Virus record (IMG/VR): IMGVR_UViG_3300048924_000191 | Coordinates: 1 to 64,000 of that record | Length of the DNA stretch: 64,000 bases | Strand: one strand, 5' to 3' | In this document: positions 12,969 through 62,870 of the stretch, piece by piece | Position numbering within the stretch: the first letter of the stretch is position 1 | How the letters are laid out: each line of letters begins with the position of its first letter | Translations under genes and position numbers: made by a program | The notes under the pieces: model-generated | What the model was told of the DNA's origin: nothing | The model's database searches: none | The model's input: the letters and a program-made list of their open reading frames with translations, nothing else

Positions 12969-12973
12969 TCGAA

Positions 12974-13243
12974 ATGTCTCTTCCAGTCTCGCTTGTCGGT
13001 ATGTCTCAAGCCGGTGGTGTGATCATGGGTCCTGGTGCAGTGCAGGTGCGCGTCAATGGTCTCCCAATATCGTTAGTCGGTGATGACGTCGCCAGTCACG
13101 GGCCGGGCATTCACCAAGGTCCAAAGATGGTTCAAGGCTCAGCCATGTTCCGTATCAACGGGATAGCGGTTGTCAGAACCACCAGTCTGGCGTCCTGTGG
13201 GCACGACGCAAACGGTTTCCCTAACGTTACCGTAGCGATATAG
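12974..13243 (+). CDS. PAAR-like spike tip protein
   Basis: 89 aa; three PAAR-like repeats (PVSLVG, PISLVGD, AVVRTT) with His/Cys metal ligands H..H..CGH. Confidence 0.85.
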   Translation: MSLPVSLVGMSQAGGVIMGPGAVQVRVNGLPISLVGDDVASHGPGIHQGPKMVQGSAMFRINGIAVVRTTSLASCGHDANGFPNVTVAI

Positions 13244-13249
13244 CCGCGA

Positions 13250-13281
13250 CATACAGCCGGGGCCAGTGCCCCGGCTGTATG
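13250..13281. terminator. 14-bp hairpin between convergent genes
   Basis: CATACAGCCGGGGC-cagt-GCCCCGGCTGTATG, arms identical to those at 9164 and 62298. Confidence 0.75.
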
Positions 13282-13284
13282 CTG

Positions 13285-16016: not shown

Positions 16017-16031
16017 TAAAGGCGAGTCGAA

Positions 16032-16679: not shown

Positions 16680-16701
16680 CCCTTAAAGGAAAATATCCGT
16701 C

Positions 16702-19635
16702 ATGTCGAAACCCTCCAGTACGATTATCGCAGAGGCTCTTGCGGAACTCGGCGGTGAGATGAGGCACTTCAAAGAAGAGCTGATCCTCGCCCTCGACAAA
16801 CCCACCGACTTTGCGGACTATGCTTTCTCGGCTGACACGCTGGAGGGCAAGACCCCTGCACAGATTCAGCAATTGCTGCTGGATGAAGTCACCAAACACA
16901 CCAGTAAGCTCGGTGTAAACGTCCACGGTATCAACGGCAATCAGGTCGGTAGTTACACCGGCCAAGAGTTCGAAGATCGACTGGACATGCTGATGGATAC
17001 TGAATCCGGCGTTCCGTTGGACTTCTACGGTGACCGTGAGTTCCTTCCGCCGTCAATTACCGGTTCCTTCGAGTCAGGCAGTAACACCACCCCTTGGGGT
17101 ATGGTGGCGATGATGTTGGAAGACAACGGTACGCTGATGGTATTGCGTACCGGTACGGACGGCGACACGGCGGGCTTGTTCTACTCGTATCTGCGCAATG
17201 CTCAGACCGAGACGGACATTGGCAACATCATCATGTCGAACGTACAGTACGAACCAGCCTTCATTCCCGCCGGCATGAAGTGCTTTGCGATCGTCCACGG
17301 TAGTCAGGACATTATCGTGGGTATTGTGGTCGACAAGGTGACCTTGGCCCGCACGGGTTACTTCGTCTCCGTCACGAACAACACGATGGACCACACCAAG
17401 CACACCGGAGTGTTCGTTCCTAACGGTTCGATCTTTGACGTCAAGTTTCACCAGACGTGGTCCTCGTCGATGGTCGGTGGTGTGACTGGCTACATCAAGA
17501 ACGGATGGTGCTATTTCCTCTGCAACCTCGATGTAGTCAATCAGTTCGGCTGGCGTGTGTGGAGAATCCCGGTAGCCAATCTGATCGCCGGTGTTTGGGG
17601 TGGTGTCGAGCAGGTTACTGGCTGGACGATCAACCGTGGGGGCGCCGGTGTGGTTTCGAGAAGCGACCTTGTCCTGTTCGACAACGTTCAGGACGCGTTT
17701 GCTCAGATTGGTAGTGCGCACATCAATCAGATCCCTGCGGCGGCATCGCCAGGTGTATTCCCGATGGTCCGTGAAGATGGTCGGGTCATCGTGATGCAAC
17801 AGAAATACTGGCAATACATCCCAACCGATCAGCGTGCTCAGCAGCAGGGGTTCGTGGGTTCGTGGACTATTGAGATCCCCGATAACAAAGTCATCGACTG
17901 TGCCAAGTACCACAACCAGAAAGTCGTCAGCACGTATGTCAGCGGTGTCGGTTTCTCCATCGGCGTCTGCCCTGCATGGGTTGGGGATTCCTACAATGCG
18001 TGGATGCGGTATGCCGGTGGTCAGGCTTGCGGTTCTTGGTACACGACCAAGTTCAATCAGATGTGGATGTGGGGGACGACAACTTACTACTCGAGTCGAG
18101 TCCTCTATCGTCTCCCCGGCCCTGATATCAATCAGGACCCGCTGGATTATTTCCAGATGCGGACAGGGGTTGGTCCTGGAGTACAGGGCGTCAACATCTC
18201 CGGGCGTCACGGATCGGCCTTGACCGTTGCCTTCCACTGCATCGGCAACATCGGTGATTTCCAGCTGACTGCGAAGAACTACATCAAACCGCTTGGGAAA
18301 CCATACGGCGACTACGCGGTTCGAGCGTTGATCACAGGTGAACCGACTTATCAGTACTCGTCGGTATCTGGCAAGTACGCGTACCGAGGTTTTGCTCCAA
18401 CTATCCAGCGTTATACCTTCGAAGAGCTCGGCGCTAGTGACATCACGGCAATCGTGATGTTGAACGAAGGACATTCTGGTGCGGAATGGCAAAGTCACGG
18501 GCGTTTCACGAAGAACACCGGTCAGTGGATCAAGGCAGGAAAGATCAATCCCGATCTGACTGTCTCTGGGGCGATCATCACCACTGGCGACTGCATGGAG
18601 TCGATCAACCAACAGATCTACAACGATCTGGTCTCCAAAGGCGTTACGTTCTACGGTGATCGCAACACATCGATGTGCTTTGAGCTGAACGTTCCTCAGA
18701 TGTACACCGATATGCCTCCGTTTGTCTTCGGTACGTATATCTCGGCAGACCAGTCAATCACCAACTTTGTCTACAGTTGTGCAATCACCGTAGGTAATCG
18801 TCAATCGATCAGTGCTGTGGCTATTCAGCCATCGACTCTGGCAAGGGCGATCGGATGGCAGGGCACAGGGCTTTCCGTAACGCCTATGGAAAACTGCGGG
18901 CAAAATGCGATCCGTCGTGTTAATGGTGGTTTTGTGGTTGGTGTGGTTCCGGCAAGTATTATCACCGTGGTCGGTGACGCTGAAACGTCTATCAACCTGT
19001 TGACGTATAACGGCACATGGGCGTTTCGAGGGACACCGGTCTGGAACCACTGGCAGGTTGCTCCGATGGGTTGGATTAACTTCCCTTCCCGTGGGCTGTA
19101 TTGGGGATTGTGCTCGGAGTTCATTCGTGGAGAAATCGACTGCGGGAGTAAACTACTCGGCGTGTTGATGGCAACTACCGACATGAACACCAGGACGATG
19201 GATAACGGTTACCCGTTGTTCCAGGACGGCAACAACTGTATCGTTCTCGTGTCTCAGAAAACGGTATCGGCCTGGACGATCTACTTCTCTGACCCGACAC
19301 CTGCCATGCTGGACGGCACTTATCAAGTCATCGCGAATACGACTTACGAGTTGAACCCCGCGGTCGATGCGAACAAGACGTTTTACATGTGGATCGTTAA
19401 AGTGAATGGCGTGCTGTCGTACCGCGTTATTCCTCAGAGTGCGGCTGCTCCAACCGGTGTGCAAGCTTCTTTGTATCTCGGTTACTTGACGACCACTGGG
19501 GCTGGTATCCAGAAGGTGGTGGCTGAGAAACGTGTAGCTGTCGGCGGTAACGTTCTGGCTCGTGCTTCTCAAGGGTCCGGTATTCCGCTCACCTCCGGTA
19601 CTCCGAACACTTACGGGCGCCTCAACTGGAAATAA
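16702..19635 (+). CDS. tail fibre / receptor-binding protein (phiKZ gp131-family-like)
   Basis: 977 aa, beta-rich; N-terminal LEG..H....NxH motif and C-terminal G-x-x-IP motif shared with the two following genes. Confidence 0.65.
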   Translation: MSKPSSTIIAEALAELGGEMRHFKEELILALDKPTDFADYAFSADTLEGKTPAQIQQLLLDEVTKHTSKLGVNVHGINGNQVGSYTGQEFEDRLDMLMDTESGVPLDFYGDREFLPPSITGSFESGSNTTPWGMVAMMLEDNGTLMVLRTGTDGDTAGLFYSYLRNAQTETDIGNIIMSNVQYEPAFIPAGMKCFAIVHGSQDIIVGIVVDKVTLARTGYFVSVTNNTMDHTKHTGVFVPNGSIFDVKFHQTWSSSMVGGVTGYIKNGWCYFLCNLDVVNQFGWRVWRIPVANLIAGVWGGVEQVTGWTINRGGAGVVSRSDLVLFDNVQDAFAQIGSAHINQIPAAASPGVFPMVREDGRVIVMQQKYWQYIPTDQRAQQQGFVGSWTIEIPDNKVIDCAKYHNQKVVSTYVSGVGFSIGVCPAWVGDSYNAWMRYAGGQACGSWYTTKFNQMWMWGTTTYYSSRVLYRLPGPDINQDPLDYFQMRTGVGPGVQGVNISGRHGSALTVAFHCIGNIGDFQLTAKNYIKPLGKPYGDYAVRALITGEPTYQYSSVSGKYAYRGFAPTIQRYTFEELGASDITAIVMLNEGHSGAEWQSHGRFTKNTGQWIKAGKINPDLTVSGAIITTGDCMESINQQIYNDLVSKGVTFYGDRNTSMCFELNVPQMYTDMPPFVFGTYISADQSITNFVYSCAITVGNRQSISAVAIQPSTLARAIGWQGTGLSVTPMENCGQNAIRRVNGGFVVGVVPASIITVVGDAETSINLLTYNGTWAFRGTPVWNHWQVAPMGWINFPSRGLYWGLCSEFIRGEIDCGSKLLGVLMATTDMNTRTMDNGYPLFQDGNNCIVLVSQKTVSAWTIYFSDPTPAMLDGTYQVIANTTYELNPAVDANKTFYMWIVKVNGVLSYRVIPQSAAAPTGVQASLYLGYLTTTGAGIQKVVAEKRVAVGGNVLARASQGSGIPLTSGTPNTYGRLNWK

Positions 19636-28709: not shown

Positions 28710-29666
28710 ATGATTGCACCAGAGATCTTATTCAGGATGCATCCTGAAGATGCCGTCAGAGCCATGATTGGTGAGAAGGTAAAGCGTCCCATGAAGGCCG
28801 ACTACCTGAGGCTTGGTAAACCCAAGTCCTTGGGTGGTCTTCGTACCTCGGTGGAAGTGACGTTGGACCGCAGTAGAGCACCGGTGGAGTTGTGGGATCG
28901 GGAAGGGTCATACTTCTTCGAATACGATCGTACCGACATCGGTCAGTTCCTTCAAAGCACTAACAGAACCCTCAAAACGGCACTGCCTGTGGATGTGGTG
29001 AATATCCTGACGGCTATCCTGTCGCCGTTTGCTATCCCAGTGGATGAGCAGGACGTTGTACCTGCCGTCTTCCTCACGCTGGGACAAGCTGACATCAATG
29101 CTAACGACGATTCGTATCGTTGGGTAGGCGACACCACAGCTACGTTGATTGCGCGTGTCATCGAGCTTTCTACGCTGCTTAAGGTTGCTCGTCTGATCGT
29201 ACCGTTCGACAGGAACTACAAGTCGTCCACCGTCAAGGACAGTATCGCTTTGCAGTTGAGTATGGCGAACGCTACGGCGCTGGATGTACCGATCACTGCG
29301 GCGATGTTTGCTCTGTCTACTCCAGTGGTAAATGGATCGACCACGTCCGAGGATAACACCAAGGTAGATCTGACCTTCAACGGTCTACCCTACTCAGGCA
29401 CGGTCAGCGTCACGTACCAACGTCGTTCGTTTGGTAATACGTTCCGCAAGCCGGTCCAGCTTTCTGGCACACAACTGTCTAATAAACAGCAGCTTGCCAC
29501 CAAGCTTTCCGTCCAAATGGGATGTGAGATCCTCGCTGCGGACATCCGCAATGAGGTATTCCCTGCCCAATCTGTGGGGTCCGTACAGGACATCCCCGTC
29601 ACGTTTGACGACAGTTCGCTGGCTTATGTTGGCACTGTTCTGGTCAAGTACCGAAGAACTTCTTGA
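28710..29666 (+). CDS. virion structural protein with two copies of the array 'A' domain
   Basis: two repeats of ..G..F.Y.R....F / D[VI]..../ S..[WY]VG pattern. Confidence 0.6.
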   Translation: MIAPEILFRMHPEDAVRAMIGEKVKRPMKADYLRLGKPKSLGGLRTSVEVTLDRSRAPVELWDREGSYFFEYDRTDIGQFLQSTNRTLKTALPVDVVNILTAILSPFAIPVDEQDVVPAVFLTLGQADINANDDSYRWVGDTTATLIARVIELSTLLKVARLIVPFDRNYKSSTVKDSIALQLSMANATALDVPITAAMFALSTPVVNGSTTSEDNTKVDLTFNGLPYSGTVSVTYQRRSFGNTFRKPVQLSGTQLSNKQQLATKLSVQMGCEILAADIRNEVFPAQSVGSVQDIPVTFDDSSLAYVGTVLVKYRRTS

Positions 29667-29687: not shown

Positions 29688-30266
29688 ATGTCTGACACGC
29701 TACGGTTATTGAAGTTCGACCCTGCCGTGGCATTGCTGATCATGGCCAACAACCACCTCAACATCAGGTTGCGTTCAGAGTTTGCGACGGTGGGTTCGCC
29801 CATCGTCAAGGACGATAACGGCCTGACCGAAGTCACGATTGCCACACGGGAATCGATTGACGAGGGTATTCGACGAGACTACACAGGTTCGATCCAATAT
29901 GTCTTCAAGCGTATTCACGTCGCTGACATCTTCTCGAATCTGGTACTCGACCTCACACCGCCAATCACGGTCAATGGGGTCTTGAGAAACATGTCGCTTG
30001 CGACTGGTCTTGTGATATCCCCAGATGACTTCGAGAACGCGTTGGTTGAGGGCAGTAGCTTTGTCCTCAAGGCCAAATCCGAATCACTGCGGTGGTTTGG
30101 TGAAACGACAGTAATGCTGAACGAGCCAGGCGTATCGATACAACTGGCCGAGGCATTCCCCAACAACGTTCTGGATGGTCTCGTACCGCCCGTATTCGAA
30201 GGACCGTTGAGTTTGAAGAAGGCGTCTGTCTTTACCAAACTTGCCGGGTTCAGCGCAGAAGGGTAA
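29688..30266 (+). CDS. virion structural protein, array 'A' domain
   Basis: YTGSIQYVFKR, SLRWFG, C-terminal LAEAFPNNVLDGL. Confidence 0.6.
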   Translation: MSDTLRLLKFDPAVALLIMANNHLNIRLRSEFATVGSPIVKDDNGLTEVTIATRESIDEGIRRDYTGSIQYVFKRIHVADIFSNLVLDLTPPITVNGVLRNMSLATGLVISPDDFENALVEGSSFVLKAKSESLRWFGETTVMLNEPGVSIQLAEAFPNNVLDGLVPPVFEGPLSLKKASVFTKLAGFSAEG

Positions 30267-30288
30267 GTGCGAGGCAGAGGGATGCGCG

Positions 30289-31332
30289 ATGCACCAAAGC
30301 AATGTGGCGAAGCTTGATCGCTTCAACAAGAAATCGAAGGAGTTGCTGGTCGACTTCATCAACGCCAAAAACAACCGAGGGTTGACGTCGGACCAGTTGG
30401 TCTTCGGCAAACCAAAGTTGGTGTCAGGCGACGGACTCTCCGAAGTCGATGTAAGCTTCGACGAGTCCACGGGATGGCCACACGATCAAAAGCGGCCTCT
30501 CGGGTATTATCGGATCAACCTTGAAGTGCTCATCGGCAATCAACCGCTGACGGTGCACGTCTTGGAAGACGGTGACGATGTGCTCCTCAAAGCCATCCAC
30601 GAACAGTACGGTCTGCTCTTGGAGAAGGAGTTGGTTACCATCCAGCTCGTTACCAGGAGTTTGCCAGACAGCTCTCCTCAGGACCAACTGAGTGGTTTCG
30701 AAGGAGAGGACGCGGAAGAAGAACCCACGGAGCCTGAAGTTCCTCCTTACCTGGATAACCGCAACTACCGCTTGACCTTCAAGGACGATCACTTGATCTT
30801 CTTTGGTGGACTGAGCGTGCAGACTCGCCGGTCAATCCAAGGTCTGGGTGGTACGATCGATTCACTCCTGGACCTGCGTGAGTATTACTCAGACGGGAAG
30901 TTCGATCTGCCGAAAGTCGATCTGGTGTTCCCAAGAGGTGAACTCTACGTCGATGAGACTGCGTACCCTGATTACGAGGACCGCAAAGCGACCAACGCGT
31001 ACCTGTACGAACTCAAGGCCGACTCCTTCATCCTTGACCAGGATGTCCTTCATTTGATCTTACAACGTCTCACCGGCGATGTTTGGGTCTCGAAAGATGA
31101 GAAGGGTCTGGACTTCAACCTGTTCGGTAGCAAAGTACTCTACAACGGGTTCGTCAAAGTCGACTACGGTCTGGAGCGTGGTTCCTACAACTATGTACTT
31201 GCCGTCGAGCTGGGCGTCAAGTGTGCGAACCTCACCGGCGTCGTCAAGATCGGTTATCAGTTCTCGAGCAGCAAGGTTCCTGGGAACATCTACCAGAACC
31301 AGGCTTCCGTTCTCCCTCTCTTCCCAAGGTAA
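30289..31332 (+). CDS. virion structural protein, 'A' plus second domain
   Basis: LVDFINAKN..LVFGKP..YYRINL; C-terminal FNLFGSKVLYNG..YNYVL domain like array members. Confidence 0.6.
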   Translation: MHQSNVAKLDRFNKKSKELLVDFINAKNNRGLTSDQLVFGKPKLVSGDGLSEVDVSFDESTGWPHDQKRPLGYYRINLEVLIGNQPLTVHVLEDGDDVLLKAIHEQYGLLLEKELVTIQLVTRSLPDSSPQDQLSGFEGEDAEEEPTEPEVPPYLDNRNYRLTFKDDHLIFFGGLSVQTRRSIQGLGGTIDSLLDLREYYSDGKFDLPKVDLVFPRGELYVDETAYPDYEDRKATNAYLYELKADSFILDQDVLHLILQRLTGDVWVSKDEKGLDFNLFGSKVLYNGFVKVDYGLERGSYNYVLAVELGVKCANLTGVVKIGYQFSSSKVPGNIYQNQASVLPLFPR

Positions 31333-48229: not shown

Positions 48230-48742
48230 ATGACCGAGAAGCAGATTCTGCTCGACCACTTGGTTTTGAAGAACAAAGCTGTACTCGACCAATATAAAGT
48301 CACGCTGCGTACTTCCGACCTTGACTTCAGTGACCCAGAAGCAGGTAACTGGGAGAGCGGTGACAATACTCGAATCATCGCCACCATGCGTCCCTCGAGG
48401 AAGGTGACAGGTAGCAATATCTATTACTACTCCAGGAACGACATGCAAGCCGCTTTTGCGGCGATTGGTTATGAAGAGGTACCGTGCGCCATCGAAGGTA
48501 CTCCAGACGTCGGTAAGGTCCTCTCAGAGCTTGCCAGGCACTACAACTTCCAGTTCGACCCGAACCACGTCCTCGATGTTCAACAAGTCGATGACCAGTT
48601 CTCGTTTGGTGTAAGTTCTAAGTGTTTGCTCTGGATCGGCACGCTCACCGTGAAGATCGTAGAAGGGTACGGAATCCCTCTCGATGTGGCGTTTCCCAAC
48701 AACGTTCTGGATGGATTCATACCGCCAGAGTTCGTGGGGTAA
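48230..48742 (+). CDS. virion array protein, domain A
   Basis: FSDP..NT..G...YYSR; LLWIG; LDVAFPNNVLDGF. Confidence 0.7.
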   Translation: MTEKQILLDHLVLKNKAVLDQYKVTLRTSDLDFSDPEAGNWESGDNTRIIATMRPSRKVTGSNIYYYSRNDMQAAFAAIGYEEVPCAIEGTPDVGKVLSELARHYNFQFDPNHVLDVQQVDDQFSFGVSSKCLLWIGTLTVKIVEGYGIPLDVAFPNNVLDGFIPPEFVG

Positions 48743-48751
48743 ATTCTATGT
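48741..48751 (+). promoter_or_regulatory. candidate late promoter AAATTCTATGT
   Basis: identical 11-mer at 49315-49325 and similar AATCCTATGT upstream of the 62870 gene; contains TATG. Confidence 0.45.
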
Positions 48752-48778
48752 CCCTTTTATCAAGCAGAGAACCAGGTT

Positions 48779-49315
48779 ATGGCCACTGATTACACCCTTG
48801 ACGAAGACAGTGTCGTCATCGATTTGATCCGCACGCAGAACCCTGGCCAGGTCCTCACGTCCAGCCTGGTGACGTTCGGCTTCCCCAACGTAAACGTCCC
48901 AAGTCAGCAGTTCCCTCACGATACGCTGATTGTTGCGACGGCAATACCTGGACGCCGATATTCAGGGAGTCAGTCTTTCAACTACAACCGGGTGCCGATT
49001 GCTGAGTTCGTTGACCCCCGACTCCCCAACCAGACCACGTTCGTTATCGCTAATGAACGTACGCTGGCGGACCTGTTGCCTGTGATCAATGAGCGGTACG
49101 ACATCCGTCTGACTGCTGACAAGATCATCAACCATTCGATCCCCAATTTCCAGGATCAGGGAATTGCAGAGTTTGAGGTGGAGCTCGAAATCGCCCCGAA
49201 CTCGAAAGTGTACAAGGACGCAATGGTGATCAAGCTTGTTCCTGAGCTGATCCCGCTGTCGGCTGTTATCAAGAATCGCCAACTCGATGGCCTTACTTAC
49301 CAGCCTCCCGCCTGA
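48779..49315 (+). CDS. virion array protein, domain A
   Basis: FGFP..YSGSQSFNYNR; LADLLPVIN; LDGLTYQPPA. Confidence 0.7.
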   Translation: MATDYTLDEDSVVIDLIRTQNPGQVLTSSLVTFGFPNVNVPSQQFPHDTLIVATAIPGRRYSGSQSFNYNRVPIAEFVDPRLPNQTTFVIANERTLADLLPVINERYDIRLTADKIINHSIPNFQDQGIAEFEVELEIAPNSKVYKDAMVIKLVPELIPLSAVIKNRQLDGLTYQPPA

Positions 49316-49325
49316 AATTCTATGT
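49315..49325 (+). promoter_or_regulatory. candidate late promoter AAATTCTATGT
   Basis: repeat of the 48741 motif, upstream of a strongly codon-biased gene that has its own terminator. Confidence 0.45.
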
Positions 49326-49372
49326 GACGTCTGTGACTCACTTACCCCACCTTCAACAAGAGAACGGTCCCC

Positions 49373-49918
49373 ATGGCTGACAATCTTACCTTAGAATCGA
49401 AGAAGGTTCTTTGCGACATGATCAACCGCAACAACGTGGAGTCCGGCTCCTCGTTGACGCCTGAGTTGGTGGATTTCGGTATCCCCTCTCAGTCGAACGA
49501 TGCGAAGAATACCGACATCACCGTTATTGCAAAATCCGGCTCTGGTTACACCGGTCAGGAAGTCATCAACTACAACCGCCTGCACCTGACCACCGAAATC
49601 GGTAACCCGTACGTGGCCTCGGCGGTTGGTCGTAACCTGATCTTCCCGATCGGTGAAGCGCTCAAGATCGCAGACATCGTTCCGGCCATCAACGCTCGTC
49701 TGGCCATCAACCTGCAAGCGGCTGACTTCACCGACGGCGATCTGCCTGAGTTCACCGGCACGCCGAACGAGATCCTGGACGTCCAGCTGTTGGTAAAGGC
49801 TGACTCGCTCTGCTACCGCGGCAGCTTGACCTTCCAACTCAAGGCCGAAGACATCCTGCTGTCGACCGTCATCGTGAACAAAGTGATGGATGGCCTGACC
49901 TACCAGCCTCCTGCTTGA
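49373..49918 (+). CDS. virion array protein, domain A (probably abundant subunit)
   Basis: FGIP..YTGQEVINYNR; SLCYRG; MDGLTYQPPA. Confidence 0.72.
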   Translation: MADNLTLESKKVLCDMINRNNVESGSSLTPELVDFGIPSQSNDAKNTDITVIAKSGSGYTGQEVINYNRLHLTTEIGNPYVASAVGRNLIFPIGEALKIADIVPAINARLAINLQAADFTDGDLPEFTGTPNEILDVQLLVKADSLCYRGSLTFQLKAEDILLSTVIVNKVMDGLTYQPPA

Positions 49919-54274: not shown

Positions 54275-54281
54275 GGGGTCA

Positions 54282-54309
54282 TAGACGAGCGCCGGTGGGC
54301 GCTCGTCTA
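54282..54309 (+). terminator. 12-bp hairpin at the boundary of two array sub-blocks
   Basis: TAGACGAGCGCC-ggtg-GGCGCTCGTCTA. Confidence 0.55.
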
Positions 54310-54331
54310 CTAACCAATTGGGAGATTATCC

Positions 54332-55357
54332 ATGCTTCGCGCCATCTTCGGTTTCGACCACATCGCAAAGAACGTGAGCGACACGTGGCTGCCAAACTGC
54401 GGTTATGTTTTTAGCAAGACCGCCTCAGGCACCAACCGTGGGGTCATCATTACACCTGACGGATCGTTGGCTGCGACACCCTCTACCGGCAACACGCCGT
54501 ACGTTCAGGTGTTCCACGATCTGTCCAAACACCTGGTTGCGCCTGTTAGCACATTCACCATCGGTATCCGCGCTAAACAGTTGGCGTTAGGCAATAGTGG
54601 TGGTTTCCTATACCTAGCCGCTGAGGCAGTCCCTACCTCGTTCATGTTGCTGTTGAACTTTCAGCAATTGACGAATATCGGCGTTGTGGGTGGCGAGAAC
54701 TATATTGAGATCACATTCGATCTGATAGCAGCTACCGCCACCTACTACATCGACGACGTGTTCTTTACCAGCATCTCCATCAACACGATCTCGTTGGCTA
54801 ACCTAAGAGCCGGCATCGTCCAGGTGGTCTACACGCTGAGCTACCCGGCCAACGTGGCGGGTATCACGGCAGTGCGTGACATCTACCTGACCGACAACTA
54901 TCCAGGTGATGGTTACGTGGGTCGTCTGGGTCCTCGCAAGATATTCCCTGTTACGCTTGACAGCGCCTCAGGAACTGATTGGACCACCAGCGATGGGTCT
55001 GGGCTTCTGACTGCTCTAAACGTCCCTATCGAGACGGCTGGAGCTGCTACCATGACCTCCGGCGTCAGCAAGGCACCACTGGTGGTGGGATTGAACCCAG
55101 GGTCTCTACCAGCGAACGCCAACGTCGATGGCGTATTCGTCATGATGGCCGGTAAGGTAGATCAGGCCGGCGCACTGACAGGTCTCTCGGCAACCAACGG
55201 CGGGAAGACCATTCTCGCTCAGTCGAAGGCGATCGGCACGGCGTTCAAGTACGGCAACCCATTCGGTGTGTTCACCCGCGCCCCTAATGGCAGTCGCTGG
55301 ACTGCTGCTTCCATCGACGCGACCACGCTCTCATTGACTCCAGACGTAGCGAGTTAA
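54332..55357 (+). CDS. virion array protein, family B (lectin/LamG-like beta-sandwich head)
   Basis: MLRAIFGFDH; YIEITFD; RDIY..D..G.LGP; APNG..WT..IDAT. Confidence 0.65.
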   Translation: MLRAIFGFDHIAKNVSDTWLPNCGYVFSKTASGTNRGVIITPDGSLAATPSTGNTPYVQVFHDLSKHLVAPVSTFTIGIRAKQLALGNSGGFLYLAAEAVPTSFMLLLNFQQLTNIGVVGGENYIEITFDLIAATATYYIDDVFFTSISINTISLANLRAGIVQVVYTLSYPANVAGITAVRDIYLTDNYPGDGYVGRLGPRKIFPVTLDSASGTDWTTSDGSGLLTALNVPIETAGAATMTSGVSKAPLVVGLNPGSLPANANVDGVFVMMAGKVDQAGALTGLSATNGGKTILAQSKAIGTAFKYGNPFGVFTRAPNGSRWTAASIDATTLSLTPDVAS

Positions 55358-55360
55358 GCC

Positions 55361-56377
55361 ATGTCATTAACCGTACGGGCAGTGCAAGCTTACGCGCTCG
55401 GTAAACCACTGGCAGCTTCCACGGTTCGGTCGATCACCGCTTATGCGCTGGTTGATACGAACCCGGTGGTTCCTGGTCCACCGGCGCCTACTGATTACAA
55501 GGCCGATCAGATCGACATCTTGTACGATCTGATCGAGAAGAGTAACCCGGGTTTCAAAGCGCAATATCCGAAAGGTACCGTGCAGTTCAGTGCGGTGACG
55601 GCGGTTCCCACGGTACCTGGGGATGGGTACAAGACCGATACGTCGATCTTGGTGTCTCCGGCACCTGGTAGTTCGGCACTGGGTCGTCAGACGGTTCGTT
55701 ATCGCCGTATCGATTTCGGTACCATCTTCAAGCACATGACGCTGACCCTGAACGATTACGTCGCTTCAGGTACGTTGTCAGCGGCGACGTGGAAAGCTTC
55801 GTTTGCCTCGAAGTTTGGGATCAAGATTCCTGCTGCAGACATTGCCAACACGACAGCGCTGACTAGCGGTGTGTTGACCAACATCAACGTGATCGCCACC
55901 AGCTGGTGCTATAAAGGTACTGTGCAGTTGACGTGGACGGTAGGACCTCGTCCTTTCACCTCCATCGTCACGGATGCAAACCGTGCGCTGGTTGGGCGGT
56001 TTTACCCAGGCAATAACAACGACTTCACCACCCCCGGCCGTAAACCGCAGGGTGAGATGTTGGTCTACTGTCAGGACGCCAGTGTTATCTCGTCGTTCCT
56101 GGAAGCGTTCACTAGCGCTTCTGTTCTCGCCTCGTCCCACAGCACAGTTATCAACTTGGTTAACTGGCTGCTGGCTAACACGAAGCGCACGGATTGGAAC
56201 GTCGGTGATTCCTCCTCTGGATCAGGTGGTGTAACCGGACTGACCTGGTATCGGTACACGCTGCCCAATGCCGCTATCCCAGATGCCAACTCCGCCAAGT
56301 ACAACCGTTGTGTCGTCTTGCAAAGCGTGGCCGGTAGTTGGTTCGCTGGCAAGATCATCATCCACTACAACGTGTAG
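55361..56377 (+). CDS. virion array adaptor: two N-terminal strand repeats, domain A, HYN domain
   Basis: TVRAVQAYAL/TVRSITAYAL at 17-aa spacing, Pro linker, YRRIDF, IIHYN. Confidence 0.7.
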   Translation: MSLTVRAVQAYALGKPLAASTVRSITAYALVDTNPVVPGPPAPTDYKADQIDILYDLIEKSNPGFKAQYPKGTVQFSAVTAVPTVPGDGYKTDTSILVSPAPGSSALGRQTVRYRRIDFGTIFKHMTLTLNDYVASGTLSAATWKASFASKFGIKIPAADIANTTALTSGVLTNINVIATSWCYKGTVQLTWTVGPRPFTSIVTDANRALVGRFYPGNNNDFTTPGRKPQGEMLVYCQDASVISSFLEAFTSASVLASSHSTVINLVNWLLANTKRTDWNVGDSSSGSGGVTGLTWYRYTLPNAAIPDANSAKYNRCVVLQSVAGSWFAGKIIIHYNV

Positions 56378-56385
56378 GGTCCGTC

Positions 56386-56880
56386 ATGGGTATTTTCGTA
56401 TCAAGCCAGGCGGACTTGATTGCGATGATCAACGTTGCGAGCGGTGTCAACTTCACCGCTTCCGACTTGGTCTTCGGCAAACCAAGAGCCGCTACCTCCG
56501 CTGAGATCACTCAGTTCGGAAAGAACAGCGCTGTCGCTGTGCGGGCCTCCGATACCACGACGTTGGTGGCCGGATTCACGACCTTCTTCTACGACCGACT
56601 GGATCTGAAGACGCTAGAGCTCTTTGACTTGACCACATGCTTCTGTGCAGACGGACTGGCCAAAGACGCGTGGTTGGGTACCGTCATCGGTTACCTCAAC
56701 GTCCCGTTCACGCCGACACATCTGGTCGAACACAGCTCGACTACGGTGAACGGTAAAGTGAATGTCCAACTGGAAGCCACGACCGATAGCCTGGGTTGGT
56801 TCGGCACAGGGACGTTGGTGTTCGGTGGTTATCCAGATATCTCGACAGCCTTCACTGACAACAAATTGACAGGCTTCTAA
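56386..56880 (+). CDS. virion array protein, domain A only
   Basis: LIAMIN..LVFGKP; FYDRLDL; SLGWFG; ISTAFTDNKLTGF. Confidence 0.7.
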   Translation: MGIFVSSQADLIAMINVASGVNFTASDLVFGKPRAATSAEITQFGKNSAVAVRASDTTTLVAGFTTFFYDRLDLKTLELFDLTTCFCADGLAKDAWLGTVIGYLNVPFTPTHLVEHSSTTVNGKVNVQLEATTDSLGWFGTGTLVFGGYPDISTAFTDNKLTGF

Positions 56881-56895
56881 GCCGAGGAATCGATC

Positions 56896-57273
56896 ATGAA
56901 TGATTGGCCGAACTACCTGATCCGTCAGGACTTCACCGAACCAGGTGAGGTGCTGAGTGTGATCCCGCTGGGCCTACTCAACGAGGCGGATCAGCGACTG
57001 ATGGCCCAAGTGCTGTCTGAGTACGCACCGCAAGTCGATAAAGACAAGTGGAACATGGACGAGCACGGCACGGAATATAGCCTGAATGGCGCTGAGGTCA
57101 TCTACAACGGTCTCAACCATCGCGACCTGCCAACCTTCAGCACGTACAAGTACGCCCTCGGGTTGCGCTTCCCAGAACGTTCTACGGCACCCGTAGGTAC
57201 TATCTTCCTGTGCTGGCATGAGCCGGTGGAGGAAGAGCCAGTTGCTGAAACACCACCTGTGAGTGAGGAGTGA
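56896..57273 (+). CDS. stand-alone HYN-type domain
   Basis: aligns with the C-terminal half of 53402 (NGLN..LPT..YKY..GLR); GAGGA RBS. Confidence 0.65.
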   Translation: MNDWPNYLIRQDFTEPGEVLSVIPLGLLNEADQRLMAQVLSEYAPQVDKDKWNMDEHGTEYSLNGAEVIYNGLNHRDLPTFSTYKYALGLRFPERSTAPVGTIFLCWHEPVEEEPVAETPPVSEE

Positions 57274-57277
57274 TCTC

Positions 57278-58312
57278 ATGCTTCGTGCAATGTACGGTTT
57301 TGATCACTGTGTCAGAACTCCAGCACCTGCCGTTGGTGCTGTGAACAACCCTTCGGTAGGTTTCGGTTACGCCAATGCCACACTGCTGAACCCTACCCTC
57401 ATGGCGGTGGACAGTAACGGTTTTCTTGGCGGTTACTCCTCAGCTCAGAACGTCAACCTGGCGTTCGACATGACGGGTCTGATTCCACCTAACCCGACCA
57501 AGGTCACGTTCGGTTGGCGTGTAAAGACCCTCCAAGTCTACGGCGCTGCTCACGCGATGATCTCGTTCTCGGTCCCAGGTACGCCTAACGATACGACTGC
57601 GTACATCATCCAGATGGCAGCAGCCAACGCCCCGTGGCTGCCAACGGTAGGTAACGAGGTCTACGTCGAGCTGACTTACGACTTCGTGACGTTCACGCCT
57701 ACCCTCACAGTCAACGGCGTCCCTGTGACTGCTACGATCGGTAGCGCTCCTAACACCGCTCAGAAGGCTGCGTTCGTGTCGGGTGCCTGGACGATCAACT
57801 TCACGCTCGCCAACACCGTGAACGCCCGTTATGCCTACCGCGACATCTACATCGTCGATGCGGTGGCGGGTGACGGCATGGTGGGTCCGCTCGGTCCTCA
57901 GAAGCTGTTTCCAATCACCTTGGACGCCGCAGCAGGGGCTGGCTGGACACCTTCGTCTGGTACGCTGTTGGATGTGTTGAACGCTGCCTTGCCAGCTAAC
58001 CCAACTGCCACTTCGCCAAGCGACAAGACTCCATTGGTCACCAGCCTTAAGACCAGTGCTCCTGAAGGTAGTCGTGTCACTGCGGTGAGTCTGTCGTTGT
58101 CGGGGACCAGTAGTGGTGACGGGGCATCGACCAGTAAGGTTGAGATCACCCAAAACAGTCAGAGCTTCTCACCGAAGTTTCCCGTCGTGGCGAAGACTAC
58201 CACCTACGGTGCGCCAATCGGGATCTTCCCGAAAGCGCCTGATGGCACCTCGTGGGATCTGGCAAAAATCGATGCGACCACCCTCAAGCTGACCCCTGAC
58301 ACCGCCGCCTGA
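57278..58312 (+). CDS. virion array protein, family B
   Basis: MLRAMYGFDH from ATG 57278 behind GAGGAG; YVELTYD; RDIYIVD; GPLGP; APDG..W..IDAT. Confidence 0.65.
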   Translation: MLRAMYGFDHCVRTPAPAVGAVNNPSVGFGYANATLLNPTLMAVDSNGFLGGYSSAQNVNLAFDMTGLIPPNPTKVTFGWRVKTLQVYGAAHAMISFSVPGTPNDTTAYIIQMAAANAPWLPTVGNEVYVELTYDFVTFTPTLTVNGVPVTATIGSAPNTAQKAAFVSGAWTINFTLANTVNARYAYRDIYIVDAVAGDGMVGPLGPQKLFPITLDAAAGAGWTPSSGTLLDVLNAALPANPTATSPSDKTPLVTSLKTSAPEGSRVTAVSLSLSGTSSGDGASTSKVEITQNSQSFSPKFPVVAKTTTYGAPIGIFPKAPDGTSWDLAKIDATTLKLTPDTAA

Positions 58313-58329
58313 TTCGAGGATTTATCATC

Positions 58330-59298
58330 ATGGCAGTTAGAGCAATTATCGGGTTCGACCACCTGCCGCAGAACGACACGAGCTGGATTAACTACGCCAG
58401 CCACGACATGACGCGCGCCGCAGACTTGTCGGCCCAAAACACCATCGTCAACGGATGGCTGGTCAGTAACGCTACTGCATCGGGCGCTGAGCGCGTAACC
58501 ATTCCTCTCGACAAATACCTGGTCGCTCCGGTAGCCAAGATCTGGTTCGGTATCCGCTGCCGTTCTACTCTCAACGCGCGTGGCGGTGCAGGCATCATCT
58601 ACCTGAACGGCACCTACGTGTTGTTGGATACGTTGATCGGCGTCACGGGTACTACCACGTACCTTGAGTTCTCCTACGACGTTGCCAGTGGTGCTGTAGA
58701 ACGTTGGATCAATGGCGTCAAACAGGCTAACGGTACCAGTCCTGGTGCAGGTCTGCGTAACCTCACGTTCGGCTTGGAAGCCAAGGGTAGTCTCAACGGT
58801 CGATACGACTGGCGTGATATCTACGTCGTCGATGATCAGGGAGCTGCACAAGGTTTGCCGGTAGGTCCTCTTGGCGCTCAGGTGACTTACCCCATCACTT
58901 TGGATGCGGCTTCGGCTTCGGACTGGACCACCACTCCGAGTGGTGCCACCCTGCTCGAAGCGTTGAACGAGCCTGGTGCGGTCCCTACGGCTAAAATCGC
59001 AACGTCGGCTTCCAACGCTCCTCTGACGGTGAGTCTCAAGTCCTCAATGCCTGCGGGTGTCGTGGTCAATGCCATCGAACTCATGGGCGGTGGTCGTTCG
59101 ACCACGACCAGTACGGCGAAAGTCGCGGCGAAGATCTCGACGGGCGGTACGGATGTTGCAGGTCTGACGCCCGTTGCGCCGATCACCAACTATGCGTACA
59201 GTCTTGGGTTCGGTGTGTTCCACAAGGCTCCGAATGGCACCCCGTGGACCAATACCAACATCGACGCTACGGATCTTGTCCTGACGCCTGATGTTTAA
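58330..59298 (+). CDS. virion array protein, family B
   Basis: MAVRAIIGFDH; YLEFSYD; RDIYVVD; GPLG; APNG..WT..IDAT. Confidence 0.65.
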   Translation: MAVRAIIGFDHLPQNDTSWINYASHDMTRAADLSAQNTIVNGWLVSNATASGAERVTIPLDKYLVAPVAKIWFGIRCRSTLNARGGAGIIYLNGTYVLLDTLIGVTGTTTYLEFSYDVASGAVERWINGVKQANGTSPGAGLRNLTFGLEAKGSLNGRYDWRDIYVVDDQGAAQGLPVGPLGAQVTYPITLDAASASDWTTTPSGATLLEALNEPGAVPTAKIATSASNAPLTVSLKSSMPAGVVVNAIELMGGGRSTTTSTAKVAAKISTGGTDVAGLTPVAPITNYAYSLGFGVFHKAPNGTPWTNTNIDATDLVLTPDV

Positions 59299-59309
59299 GG
59301 GGATTCTCC

Positions 59310-59981
59310 ATGCCAGTCAATATTGCAAACATCCAAGGCTACGCATTGACGCGCCTAGCCTCGCCGGTGAACATCGCCAACATTCAGGGTTACGTGCTGG
59401 CTAACCCACCTGCGCCCGTCCAACTGCGAGACATCCGTGGTTACGTGATGGTGACTGCGCCAGCGCCCGTTCAGTTGCGGACCATCAATGGCTACGCCAT
59501 GGTCCCGTTCCAGGACTTGCCGAAAGGTAAGACGGCAGCAGTGGCATTGATGGACATGATCCTCGTTCGGTTGAAGAGTGCCCGTCCAGCCTCGCACTTC
59601 AATTTGGGTGCTGTGGAGCTCGGTACCGAGACCGACTACAACGCCAAGGTGAAGTTGACACCGAATGCGGTAGCCTTATTGTCAGGGGAGATGTACTTCC
59701 ACTACAACCGGATTTATCTGTCACGGATGCCGAGTCTGAGTTCGATCGTGATCGGGAGCGCGGCTAACACCCACGCCCTGATTCCAGCGATCAACACTCT
59801 CACCGGCATGCAACTCACCACGAACGACATCGTGAATGAGGACATTCCAGCAGGGTACGTGGAAGTCACTCTGACTGCAGCGGCTACCAGTTATCTGTTC
59901 ATTCCAGGGACTCAGTGCCAAGTGGGTAACACACCGTCGCTGGCAGCTCAGTTCAAAACTGACACGATCCTCTGGTCGTAA
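59310..59981 (+). CDS. virion array adaptor: four N-terminal strand repeats plus domain A
   Basis: four 17-aa repeats PV[NQ][IL]..I.GY; FHYNRIYL; THALIPAIN. Confidence 0.7.
   Translation: MPVNIANIQGYALTRLASPVNIANIQGYVLANPPAPVQLRDIRGYVMVTAPAPVQLRTINGYAMVPFQDLPKGKTAAVALMDMILVRLKSARPASHFNLGAVELGTETDYNAKVKLTPNAVALLSGEMYFHYNRIYLSRMPSLSSIVIGSAANTHALIPAINTLTGMQLTTNDIVNEDIPAGYVEVTLTAAATSYLFIPGTQCQVGNTPSLAAQFKTDTILWS
59313..59510 (+). repeat. 4 x 51-nt coding tandem repeat in two sub-types
   Basis: PVNIANIQGY x2, then PVQLR[DT]I[RN]GY x2. Confidence 0.85.
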
Positions 59982-59994
59982 GGAAAAACAAACC

Positions 59995-61086
59995 ATGAAG
60001 ATTCATGCGATGTACGGTTTGGACCTGCCGACCACGAACGCGACAGGCAACGGCAGTAACGTACTTATCACTCGGCTGCCAAACGGGCCGTGGCAGTCGA
60101 TGTCGACAAACAGCGAAACCAATTTCAGTATCCAGGTTTGGACGGATGGATGGCTGAGAATGGGGATCGGTGCCGGAGCTCCGAACTTTGGCAACTATCG
60201 ATTCCGCGCCGTAGCTGACATCAAGGAAATGATCCCAGTCGTTACACCAACCTCGAACTTGTACTTTGGCGTTCGGGTAAAGGCCGGTACCGGATACACC
60301 GGCAGTACTGTGGTGACGTTGTCTTCCGCGGTAGACATCAATAACCTGGTCAACCTGTTCCAGATCACGGATCTGCCCGGTTACGTGATCGATAAGTCGT
60401 ACTACGTAGAGTTTAACTTGAACTTTGCGAACAACACTATCGATCGCCGTGTCGATGGTAAACCACTGGCGCAGATGGCCATGCCTGCTTGGATGGCCAC
60501 CGCAGTATCTGCGTCGCCTGGCGGTACCAGCGTTTATGTGGGTATCGGTGCCAGCTTCTCGTACAGTATCAGTCAGGGCCAAACCCACTACTTCTGGTGG
60601 CGTGATTTCTACTGCGTCGAGTGGGAGGCTGGGGAACTCGCTCAGTTTCTGGGTCCTCAGGTGGTGGAAAAGGTACCTGTCGATACAGTGGCGGCTACTG
60701 CCTGGACTGCTAGTACTGGCACTGCGACTTCGGTCTTGAAGACGGGGTACAGTAACCCATCCACTGCCATCGGCGCTCCAACCCTCACCACCGACGATGC
60801 GATGACGCCGGGTAGTATCACCTACAACCCCACCAACATTCCAGTGAATGCCGTTCTCAACGGTATCCTCGTGAAGGGACGCTCAGCAGTGAGTGTAAAT
60901 GCCACGGGCAACTTGGGCGTCTCCGCTACGGTCGGTGGGGTGGAGTCTTCGGATGCCAACGTAGCGATGGTAGCTGCGCAGACGTTCTACGACCGGATGT
61001 TGTTCCTCACTAAAACCCCAGGCGGGCTACCATGGACTCAGCCAGCGTTGGCGGGCCTTACCGTCAAAGCCAAACCGAAGGTGTAA
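59995..61086 (+). CDS. virion array protein, family B (divergent)
   Basis: MKIHAMYGLD; YYVEFNL; WRDFY; FLGPQ; TPGG.PWT. Confidence 0.62.
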   Translation: MKIHAMYGLDLPTTNATGNGSNVLITRLPNGPWQSMSTNSETNFSIQVWTDGWLRMGIGAGAPNFGNYRFRAVADIKEMIPVVTPTSNLYFGVRVKAGTGYTGSTVVTLSSAVDINNLVNLFQITDLPGYVIDKSYYVEFNLNFANNTIDRRVDGKPLAQMAMPAWMATAVSASPGGTSVYVGIGASFSYSISQGQTHYFWWRDFYCVEWEAGELAQFLGPQVVEKVPVDTVAATAWTASTGTATSVLKTGYSNPSTAIGAPTLTTDDAMTPGSITYNPTNIPVNAVLNGILVKGRSAVSVNATGNLGVSATVGGVESSDANVAMVAAQTFYDRMLFLTKTPGGLPWTQPALAGLTVKAKPKV

Positions 61087-61089
61087 TCC

Positions 61090-62292
61090 ATGGCTAACCC
61101 TAAATTCGTACTTCGATCGCTTGACGTGTTTGCGATGTACGGCGTGAATAATCTTCCGCCGTTTGGTACCCCTGGTCCTGCTGCGATTCTTACAGCGATC
61201 AACAAGGAGCAGGGCATCACACTCACCTCAGCACAGGTCACGGTTGGTGCGCCTGTAGCAACGACAGGCGACACGTTGTTCAATACCTCGGTGACACTGA
61301 CATCAATCCCTAACAAGGGGTTTAAAGGGACGTTCACGGCTCGATACAACCGAGTCAGTGGCAGTCTGTCAGCGGTGTTGAACAACCTCACCATTCCCGG
61401 TGATGGAGCTTTCACGGTAGGTACCACTCACGACCTTATCCCTCTGATCAACACAGCCACGGGCTTGACGTTGGTTACTGGAGACATCGTGAATGAGGCC
61501 ATTCCGGTTGGGACAAACTCGGTCGATCTGAAAGCTGCTTCCACGAGTTACTTCTTCCTGCCTGGGTCGACCTTCAAGGTTTACGCAGGTGAGATCGCAG
61601 GTGAGCCGTGGATGTTGTTCGACGTGAACTCGTTGACTGACGTCAAGACCACAGGTTCGACGGGTACGCTGGCAAGTGCAGCGCAGGACAACACGTACTT
61701 GATTGATGGGGAACCTACCCTGAAGATCACCGGTACGGGTTCCCTGACGATCAACCTCGGTCAGTTGTTTGATTCGAGTATTCCTGAATGGACGCTGGAA
61801 TGGTCGAGTCGTTTGAACACGACCACCACAGGCTACGCTAACCTGCTCCGTCTTGGCAGTGCGACGGCGTACCAGCTGGTGCAACGGACTTCCGATTCTG
61901 GTTTCGGTCTGAGGATACAGCAAGGTATCGACTTCTCGACACAAGCCGGTGCATGGAACTTCCCGTTCGGCAGCGTTGCGAAGAACGGCGTGCTGACTCG
62001 TTACGCCGCTCAGAAGAAGAATGGTCTCATCACCATGTTTGTGGACGGTAAAGCTACCAACATGGCCAATGGTACCGGTTCGACCTACAACAGTAAATCG
62101 TTTTCCGCAGGCGCCGGTGTTGCAGCGTGTGACCGGATTACCCTGGGACTTCTGGCGCAAAACATCAGTCATGTTCGTCTCAGTAAGTTCGCTCGGTATC
62201 CGATCGACTACACGCCGAAACCGTTCAAGTCTGCTCCAACGCTTGCGCAAGCTGCACCGAACACCGATCTCTCTGGATTCGATCCAGCATAA
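61090..62292 (+). CDS. virion array adaptor with inserted LamG/ConA-like domain
   Basis: one N-terminal strand (VLRSLDVFAM), domain A, then WTLEW..ITMFVDG..ISHVRLSKFARY LamG-like block, terminal LAQAAPNTDLSGF. Confidence 0.7.
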   Translation: MANPKFVLRSLDVFAMYGVNNLPPFGTPGPAAILTAINKEQGITLTSAQVTVGAPVATTGDTLFNTSVTLTSIPNKGFKGTFTARYNRVSGSLSAVLNNLTIPGDGAFTVGTTHDLIPLINTATGLTLVTGDIVNEAIPVGTNSVDLKAASTSYFFLPGSTFKVYAGEIAGEPWMLFDVNSLTDVKTTGSTGTLASAAQDNTYLIDGEPTLKITGTGSLTINLGQLFDSSIPEWTLEWSSRLNTTTTGYANLLRLGSATAYQLVQRTSDSGFGLRIQQGIDFSTQAGAWNFPFGSVAKNGVLTRYAAQKKNGLITMFVDGKATNMANGTGSTYNSKSFSAGAGVAACDRITLGLLAQNISHVRLSKFARYPIDYTPKPFKSAPTLAQAAPNTDLSGFDPA

Positions 62293-62297
62293 AGCAG

Positions 62298-62330
62298 CAT
62301 ACAGCCGGGGCGCAATGCCCCGGCTGTATG
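62298..62330. terminator. 14-bp hairpin between convergent genes
   Basis: CATACAGCCGGGGC-gcaat-GCCCCGGCTGTATG. Confidence 0.78.
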
Positions 62331-62345: not shown

Positions 62346-62870
62346 TTAAGCCTCGGCGTCGAAACCACTCAGGTCAGTGGTAGTCGCCGCTTCATCCAAA
62401 GGGACGTCAGCGTCCGGGATGTCCAGGACGGCGGCGTAGGTGCCGGTGTACAGCAAGCTGGACACGTTGGCGACCACGTCGGCCGAACCCGGGGTATCTT
62501 CGTTCACTGGGCGAACGATGTTCGACAGAGTGAATTCGGATTCCAGCAGACCCAGAGCGGTAGCGATCTTGGTCTTGACCTGTGGGTCGGTGTCGGAAGC
62601 TGCGATCACCACCGGAATATCTTTGGCGGCAGCGATTGCCTGGCCGGAAGCCAGAGCCAGACGGGTGTAGGAGAAAGTCTGCGAACCAGAGAAACCCTGG
62701 TTGGCGATTGCGGTGAAGGTCACCGAGGTGTTACGACCGCCAGTACCGGCAGCGGCCGAAGGCGCACCGACGGTAACTTTGGCCAGAGTGGCGTTCAGAC
62801 CGGCGTTCGCACTGTTGACCAGTGCCAGGACGTTCTCCTGAGCCGTGATGGACGGGTTGATCTTTGCCAT
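62346..62870 (-). CDS. virion array protein, domain A (inverted, own promoter)
   Basis: 174 aa from ATG 62870 (MAKINP); FSGSQTFSYTR; SLLYTG; LDEAATTTDLSGF. Confidence 0.72.
   Translation of the reverse strand: MAKINPSITAQENVLALVNSANAGLNATLAKVTVGAPSAAAGTGGRNTSVTFTAIANQGFSGSQTFSYTRLALASGQAIAAAKDIPVVIAASDTDPQVKTKIATALGLLESEFTLSNIVRPVNEDTPGSADVVANVSSLLYTGTYAAVLDIPDADVPLDEAATTTDLSGFDAEA

Follow-up and report, generated by a model that had tools for sequence, protein, structure and literature searches.

We analyzed a 64,000-nucleotide stretch (hereafter, the window) of the uncultured jumbo phage record IMGVR_UViG_3300048924_000191, part of a 243-kb IMG/VR contig. The region of interest contains three modules, each consisting of a block of one or two lectin-like "head" genes (B1 to B4) followed within 3–11 nt by a fiber-adaptor gene. 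The window contains at least 17 DUF7941 (PF25613) ORFs in a paralogue array, and phiKZ-type head and virion PHROGs are present. Relatives include FLC9, SPN3US, and Erwinia jumbo phages.

Table. Features of the head and adaptor gene array (coordinates in the window)
Feature	Position	Strand	Description	Support
B1	54332..55357	+	341 aa, predicted two-domain all-beta protein (ConA-like jelly roll plus C-terminal sandwich)	ORF; family alignment; AlphaFold2 (AF2) pLDDT 91.7; Foldseek
Adaptor 1	55361..56377	+	Two strand units (residues 3-13 and 20-30; nt 55367-55399 and 55418-55450), Pro-rich linker, full-length DUF7941	PF25613, 99.4 bits over residues 45-337; orthologues without B1 start directly at the linker
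Split gene, first half	56389..56880	+	DUF7941 N-domain plus linker only, no units	Pfam; conserved as 164 aa in all loci
Split gene, second half	56896..57273	+	DUF7941 C-domain only	phrog_1037 positions 183-286; conserved as about 125 aa in relatives
B2	57278..58312	+	344 aa; inferred partners, the two L-R units of adaptor 2	Alignment; locus L004 keeps B2 alone with only L-R units
B3	58330..59298	+	322 aa; inferred partners, the two N-I units of adaptor 2	Alignment; natural fusions P0083 and P0193 join B3 directly to an N-I unit; AF2 model
Adaptor 2	59310..59981	+	Four units (residues 3-13, 20-30, 37-47, and 54-64; nt 59316-59348, 59367-59399, 59418-59450, and 59469-59501; two N-I then two L-R), DUF7941 N-domain, C-terminal linker	PF25613, 50.8 bits; orthologues carry 4, 3, or 2 units
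B4	59995..61086	+	363 aa, most divergent window paralogue	Alignment; separate orthogroup in the B tree
Adaptor 3	61090..62292	+	One unit (residues 6-16; nt 61105-61137), DUF7941 N-domain, C-terminal domain matching phrog_3545 (LamG-like tail motif)	PF25613, 66.6 bits; one unit in every orthologue
Hairpin	62298..62330		14-bp stem between convergent genes, likely end of the + strand fiber-gene array	Terminator scan
DUF7941 gene	62346..62870	-	N-domain only, no units; orthologue of FLC9 gp309	Pfam, 65.8 bits

Head genes and strand units

The four B genes align over their full length and share G78, R80, E126, the RD-Y motif, LG, and the P-x-G-x-x-W...P C-terminus; E126 and D183 are invariant. They form one family with about 2,600 clusters at 50% identity in public data. 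The three adaptors all exceed the gathering score of the DUF7941 model (27 bits) and keep the C-terminal T/N-x-L-x-G-F type linker. The junctions between each block and its adaptor are 3, 11, and 3 nt, and the 11-residue strand units recur at a period of exactly 17 residues. The sequence-only reading had described these genes, motifs, junctions, and N-terminal repeats, and its observation was confirmed and holds well beyond the window.

To determine whether the units exceed chance, we built a scoring matrix from them. True units score 17-27 bits, whereas no other window in 63,353 sequence windows of adaptor-family and B proteins reaches 8. In 14 non-redundant loci, 30 of 30 DUF7941 genes preceded by a B gene carry units. 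In contrast, 0 of 138 other DUF7941 genes carry N-terminal units, although 2 have weak internal hits of 7.1-7.3 bits (Fisher p = 3.6e-31, not corrected for phylogeny). Moreover, the two N-I units of adaptor 2 share 11 identical residues but differ at 9 synonymous codon positions, with a nucleotide identity of 0.63, and TRF finds no tandem repeat in the DNA. The peptides are therefore old copies held by selection rather than a recent slippage.

Sequence searches were largely negative. Megablast of the region against 50,697 phage records found nothing, and tblastn of B finds only FLC9. The B and DUF7941 alignments hold no conserved stretch, and two single-protein scans found nothing. B has no Pfam hit, and a profile search against PDB sequences found no match; the C-terminal domain of adaptor 3 has no Pfam or PDB match either. 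Because MAFFT repeatedly aligned the last 22 residues of B to the end of the adaptor N-domain, we tested whether the B C-domain is homologous to the DUF7941 N-domain; hhalign gives a probability of 0.15, and the idea was rejected. Additionally, we tested whether the units copy the conserved N-terminal strand of B or the DUF7941 linker. The scoring matrix gives B N-termini at most 0.8 bits and linkers below 5, so this is not supported.

Covariation, natural fusions, and predicted structures

The sequence-only reading had named covariation in related genomes, and the fold of B alone, as tests of its model. In slot 1 (the position of B1 and adaptor 1), the window and loci L004, L011, L024, and L029 have B1 and two units, whereas L002, L006, L012, L013, L014, L015, and L016 lack both. 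The same hairpin, RBS, and ATG precede either B1 or the unit-less gene. A tree of three conserved neighboring genes requires at least 3 changes, including one within the sister pair L014/L024. In slot 2, genomes with B2 and B3 always keep at least one N-I and one L-R unit (4, 3, or 2 in total), while L004 has B2 only and only L-R units, and L028 has B3 only and only an N-I unit. No orphan B and no orphan unit occurs in the 14 loci. However, B and its units are physically adjacent, so each joint loss can be a single deletion.

The same design, with unrelated unit sequences but the same 17-residue period, occurs in three other lineages, namely, FLC9 (6 B genes, gp311-316, then gp310 with 8 units), L017 (3 blocks), and L030. 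FLC9 is the only cultured phage with the system. Across lineages, unit type follows B orthogroup. In contrast, SPN3US has DUF7941 arrays but no B and no units.

Three natural fusions, the proteins P0083, P0087, and P0193, have the order B–unit–DUF7941, with only 3-4 residues between the last strand of B and the unit. P0193 is sister to the B3 of the window, so this fusion is derived and tolerated. In an AF2 model of P0193, the B part has pLDDT above 90, and the cognate N-I unit forms a 13-residue strand (323-335, pLDDT 82-88) after a 4-residue turn from the last strand of B (313-318), with two C-domain strands being longer. The two non-cognate L-R units in the same chain (341-372) are below 40 and disordered. 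In this model, the unit columns are covered by only two sequences, and B–unit contacts are inferred from secondary structure and confidence only. Adaptor sequences caused misalignment and were left out of the alignment, and the DUF7941 part is therefore poor.

B1 alone is modeled as a confident, complete two-domain protein, so nothing requires a missing strand. Foldseek against PDB gives 219 hits at E <= 0.001, including legume lectins, CBM22, and LamG-type domains, and the predicted B N-domain matches the concanavalin-A-like jelly roll (probability 1.0; legume lectins TM 0.40-0.48 on the target). A structural relative of B is annotated as a virion structural protein, and the structural relatives of B include siphophage proteins (AchV4, JS26).

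A docking model and its alternatives

Collectively, the covariation, the natural fusions, and the AF2 model of a fusion support a cognate, type-specific coupling between each B protein and the strand units of the next adaptor. We propose, with moderate confidence, that B is a secreted-virion type head and that each unit type most likely recruits its cognate B protein noncovalently, adding a beta-strand to the C-terminal domain of B beside its last strand. The DUF7941 N-domain and C-terminal linker would then place the loaded adaptor into the head-to-tail DUF7941 filaments that hang from the peripheral baseplate of chimalliviruses, and the heads would thus help decide what the phage can bind. 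Our analysis establishes the association, its type specificity, its modular gain and loss, the fusions, and the folds, the latter as predictions; binding in trans, strand topology (groove filling or edge addition), stoichiometry, presence of B in virions, incorporation into filaments, and the ligand are inferred.

The interpretation of the sequence-only reading is therefore only partly supported. The coupling and the lectin-like fold of B were supported. Its claims that B is an incomplete sandwich completed by a donated strand, that unit number sets valency, and that B binds glycans were not shown. Units per B vary from 1 to 2 in the window clade, with 3 units for 2 B genes in slot 4 and 8 for 6 in FLC9. 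Its statement that no such system was known for jumbo phage virions needs qualifying, as a 2026 paper (PMC13742148) showed that DUF7941 proteins form baseplate-anchored filaments, with AlphaFold predicting that each protomer donates a strand to the next. That paper does not mention the B family or the N-terminal unit arrays.

Three alternatives appear unlikely. First, B proteins might be assembly factors that bind the adaptor strands transiently, for example, to keep adaptors from joining filaments too early, and would be absent from the virion. This reading predicts the same genetic coupling and fits the complete fold of B alone, and a gene just upstream of its client is typical of phage fiber chaperones. 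However, B is large, fast-evolving, and paralogue-rich, is fused to LamG-type carbohydrate-binding domains in FLC9 and in many metagenomic relatives, forms stable fusions with adaptors, and has the structural relative annotated as a virion protein. Second, B plus the 5′ unit-coding stretch might be a recombination cassette without physical interaction, since the indel is exact and contiguous and one event removes both. In contrast, units change in number independently of B but never fall to zero for a B that is present; the absence of orphans, the purifying selection on the peptides, the conservation of the design in four deep lineages, the fusion geometry, and the AF2 model also argue against it. 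Finally, the units might dock onto DUF7941 N-domains, giving fiber branching, or onto each other, with B merely co-inherited; although these N-domains are predicted to accept a strand from another protomer and the units and the linker share a loose h-x-h-x-x-h-x-G-h pattern by eye, the scoring matrix finds no linker at 8 bits or above, and this model explains neither why units vanish when B is absent while the DUF7941 genes remain nor why only the cognate unit orders next to B in the fusion model.

Related systems and implications

The closest systems are the DUF7941 fiber proteins of Chimalliviridae (Goslar gp22/gp23, phiKZ gp126/gp127; PMC13742148, PMC13250141), which likewise form long paralogue arrays and, as is proposed here for the heads, are predicted to assemble by a short strand from one chain joining a beta-sheet of another and carry host-recognition domains on the fibers. 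In Goslar, however, the binding domains are fused in cis and the donated strand is the linker after the N-domain, whereas here separate B proteins would be recruited by N-terminal tandem units with a fixed period and several specificities. In chaperone-usher pili, as is proposed here, an N-terminal peptide of patterned hydrophobic residues from one subunit supplies a strand to another. In contrast, no chaperone or usher family was found in Pfam and PHROG scans of this region, whose context is a phage virion module, the proposed acceptor is not an Ig-like pilin, no incomplete fold is demonstrated, and one donor chain would carry several different donor strands in tandem. Branched receptor-binding-protein systems (CBA120 TSP1-4, G7C gp63.1/gp66, phiKp24; PMC9700779) display several different receptor-binding modules on one virion through dedicated adaptor segments, with modular exchange, as is proposed here. 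They use trimeric tailspikes and T4 gp10-like docking domains, however, and no gp10-like or XD docking domain was found by Pfam or PHROG in any of the ten proteins scanned here, where docking would be by 11-residue linear motifs. By analogy only, cellulosome scaffoldins carry tandem, type-specific docking sites (cohesin-dockerin) that determine which partners are displayed, and possibly how many, but those sites are folded 140-residue modules and the system is not viral. For concanavalin-A-like lectin/glucanase and LamG jelly rolls, the predicted fold of the B N-domain matches, without a sequence-level match to any Pfam or PDB family.

A further reading is possible but tentative. The adaptor N-terminus might be a peptide "rail" on which each 17-residue unit is an address that captures one copy of one cognate lectin-like head by strand insertion. 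The kind and number of receptor-binding heads on a jumbo-phage fiber would then be written in a short linear code, exchanged between phages as a cassette made of a head gene plus its address.

If the docking model is true, it explains how some jumbo phages load several different binding heads onto the recently described DUF7941 fiber cloud without fusing them to the fiber, and it gives a function to a large uncharacterized protein family. It also defines very small docking motifs whose specificity can be tested directly with peptides. Moreover, it offers a rare natural case in which gene fission and fusion, indels, and paralogue divergence all report on one protein-peptide interface.

The DUF7941 gene array and its strand units

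To assess the array described in the sequence-only reading, we first annotated the genes and their families. The + strand from about 48.2 kb to 62.3 kb of the window is one long array of paralogous genes. The domain termed A in that reading is Pfam DUF7941 (PF25613), which also corresponds to PHROG 1037, "virion structural protein." The four genes of family B align end to end at 26-35% identity to B1, and they share G78, R80, E126, R-D-[IF]-Y, L-G-P, and the C-terminal P-x-G-x-x-W...L-x-P. In addition, one DUF7941 gene is split into an N-domain-plus-linker gene (about 164 aa) and a C-domain-only gene (about 125 aa), and because this split is conserved in all related loci, it is not a pseudogene. 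The window, identical to the 243-kb contig IMGVR_UViG_3300048924_000191, carries phiKZ-type head and virion PHROGs. No cultured phage is close at the DNA level, and the only isolate with B homologues is the Burkholderia jumbo phage FLC9.

Positions of the B genes and of associated features in the window and in the phages FLC9 and SPN3US
Sequence	Position	Feature
Window	54332-55357	B1 gene
Window	57278-58312	B gene (B2)
Window	58330-59298	B gene (B3)
Window	59995-61086	B gene (B4)
Window	54332-55354	Stretch modelled as B1 and used for the whole-fold comparison
Window	54332-54364, 57278-57310, 58330-58365, 59995-60027	Conserved N-termini of the B proteins
Window	55290-55354, 58240-58309, 59230-59295	B C-termini resembling the end of the DUF7941 N-domain
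Window	59850-59930	End of the adaptor N-domain, compared with the B C-termini
Window	54276-54331 (and the equivalent sites in L002, L014, L024)	GC-rich hairpin and GGGAGA RBS upstream of slot 1
Window	56389-56880	DUF7941 N-domain-plus-linker gene of the split pair
Window	56896-57273	DUF7941 C-domain-only gene of the split pair
Window	28710-29666	318-aa protein with two tandem DUF7941 N-domains, well outside the flagged region
Window	29688-31332, 48230-49918	Further DUF7941-like ORFs, well outside the flagged region
FLC9 (L001)	17105, 18245, 19295	Annotated starts of gp313, gp312, and gp311
SPN3US (L031)	12191-14122, 15645-17536	Two long DUF7941 proteins, each followed by a pair of non-DUF7941 virion proteins

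The observation that the DUF7941 gene following each B block carries extra N-terminal strand repeats is confirmed. The protein encoded from 55361 begins with two strand units, the 59310 protein has four (two of N-I type, then two of L-R type), and the 61090 protein has one. The units sit at residues 3, 20, 37, and 54, an exact 17-residue period that comprises an 11-residue strand plus a 6-residue, mostly Pro-rich linker. The junctions between the B genes and these adaptors are 3, 11, and 3 nt. A scoring matrix built from the units gives true units 17-27 bits, whereas nothing else in the A or B proteins reaches 8. The very N-terminus of B (M-x-[LIV]-[RKH]-A-[IM]-x-G-[FL]-D-H-[LIV]-P), which is conserved from residue 1 across hundreds of clusters, resembles a strand unit by eye but scores poorly with this matrix. 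Moreover, the two N-I units share 11 identical residues but show 9 synonymous codon differences, and TRF detects no DNA repeat. These are old copies kept by selection on the peptide.

Covariation of B genes and units across relatives

To examine the covariation proposed in the sequence-only reading, we retrieved orthologous loci (designated L) from metagenomes and IMG/VR and annotated them with family HMMs. In 14 non-redundant loci, every DUF7941 gene that follows a B gene has units (30/30), while none of the 138 others has N-terminal units (Fisher p = 3.6e-31, uncorrected for relatedness). At slot 1, the position of B1 and its adaptor, five genomes have B1 plus a two-unit adaptor. In contrast, seven lack B1, and there the orthologous DUF7941 gene starts directly at the post-unit linker. 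The same upstream hairpin, RBS, and ATG precede either B1 or the unit-less gene, and the conserved hairpin and RBS thus mark a precise cassette boundary; the indel is therefore exactly "B1 plus junction plus units." On a tree of three neighbouring conserved genes, this state changes at least three times, including between the close sisters L014 and L024. At slot 2, genomes with B2 and B3 have 4, 3, or 2 units but always at least one of each type, whereas locus L004 has B2 only and only L-R units, and locus L028 has B3 only and only an N-I unit. Unit number thus drifts on its own, but never to zero for a B that is present. Some genomes lack slot 3, and others have a further slot with two more B genes (B5 and B6) and a three-unit adaptor.

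The design is old. FLC9 has six B genes, three of them carrying LamG domains, followed by gp310, whose N-terminus has eight units at an exact 17-residue period before a DUF7941 domain. The annotated starts of FLC9 gp313, gp312, and gp311 appear to lie too far downstream, as upstream in-frame starts restore the conserved B N-terminal strand. Similarly, the distant contig L017 has three B blocks, each followed by an adaptor with its own unrelated units, again with a 17-residue period, and locus L030 shows two B genes and four units in two subtypes. The B orthogroups are well supported, and unit type follows orthogroup across lineages. In contrast, SPN3US has a DUF7941 array but no B and no units. 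The paired virion proteins that follow its two long DUF7941 proteins have FN3-like N-termini and may be a different partner family in the same genomic position as B. Finally, a profile search of 1.84 billion representatives finds 2,587 B-family clusters, nearly all of 320-370 aa and matching from residue 1 to the end.

Natural fusions and predicted structures

Three natural proteins join B to its adaptor in one chain. P0083 consists of B3, one N-I unit, and a DUF7941 N-domain; P0087 of a B1-like protein, one unit, and a full DUF7941; and P0193 of B3, then N-I, L-R, and L-R units and a DUF7941, with B2 encoded separately upstream. Only 3-4 residues separate the last strand of B from the unit. 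The B part of P0193 is sister to the B3 of the window, so that fusion is derived. A tolerated fusion with so short a tether implies that the C-terminus of B and the start of its cognate unit are neighbours in the complex. Furthermore, the 1332-aa metagenomic protein P0162 fuses B, several LamG domains, and pieces of the DUF7941 N-domain in a single chain without strand units, and it represents an all-covalent version of the same parts.

To obtain structural information, we predicted B1 alone from a 56-sequence alignment, which gives pLDDT 91.7 and pTM 0.89. The model has an N-terminal jelly roll and a C-terminal sandwich, and its conserved N-terminal strand is integral to the fold. Foldseek places the N-domain among concanavalin-A-like lectin, CBM, and LamG jelly rolls. 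Foldseek also finds the whole two-domain fold (TM 0.7-0.8, 12-18% identity) in uncharacterised virion proteins of non-jumbo phages, often as several paralogues per genome, for example in Achromobacter AchV4, Serratia JS26, Providencia Kokobel1, and Sphingomonas Kharn. In contrast, a search of the PDB finds no sequence relative. The last 22 residues of B (P-x-G-x-x-W...A-T-x-L-x-L-T-P-D) resemble the end of the DUF7941 N-domain (P-A-G-x-x-E-V-T-L-T-A-A-x-T-S-Y-L-F-x-P-G), and every MAFFT mode misaligns them; however, hhalign sees no homology between the profiles of the two families.

In the AF2 model of P0193, the B part keeps pLDDT above 90. After a four-residue turn from the last B strand (313-318), the N-I unit forms a 13-residue strand (323-335) at pLDDT 82-88. 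In contrast, the two L-R units that follow (341-372) are below 40 and unstructured, which provides an internal control for type specificity. Moreover, two C-domain strands are 13 residues long in this model, against 6-7 in B1 alone. This difference is consistent with the unit pairing along them, whether by filling a groove or by extending a sheet edge, but it is confounded by the paralogue difference.

Relation to published DUF7941 fibres

As reported (PMC13742148; Sci Adv 2026), DUF7941 proteins are chimallivirus-specific and abundant in Goslar virions. They form filaments in vitro, and AlphaFold predicts head-to-tail assembly in which the linker of one protomer joins the N-domain sheet of the next. 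Some are fused to carbohydrate-binding, glycoside-hydrolase, or LRR domains, and phiKZ gp127 sits at the outer baseplate. That paper does not mention B-type proteins or N-terminal unit arrays, and a text search for donor-strand mechanisms in phage receptor-binding proteins found nothing relevant.

Collectively, the interpretation offered by the sequence-only reading is supported in part. Its core inference, that cognate strand units on the adaptor recruit specific lectin-like heads, is well supported by comparative genomics, the fusions, and one structural model. While the occurrence of the units is established by our analysis, binding between separate B and adaptor chains is inferred, and the stronger proposals of that reading, namely, that B is an incomplete fold, that unit number sets valency, and that the heads bind glycans, remain hypotheses. 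The DUF7941 fibre and its strand-donation assembly are already published; to this known fibre, the present system adds a large new head family and a compact, testable docking code.
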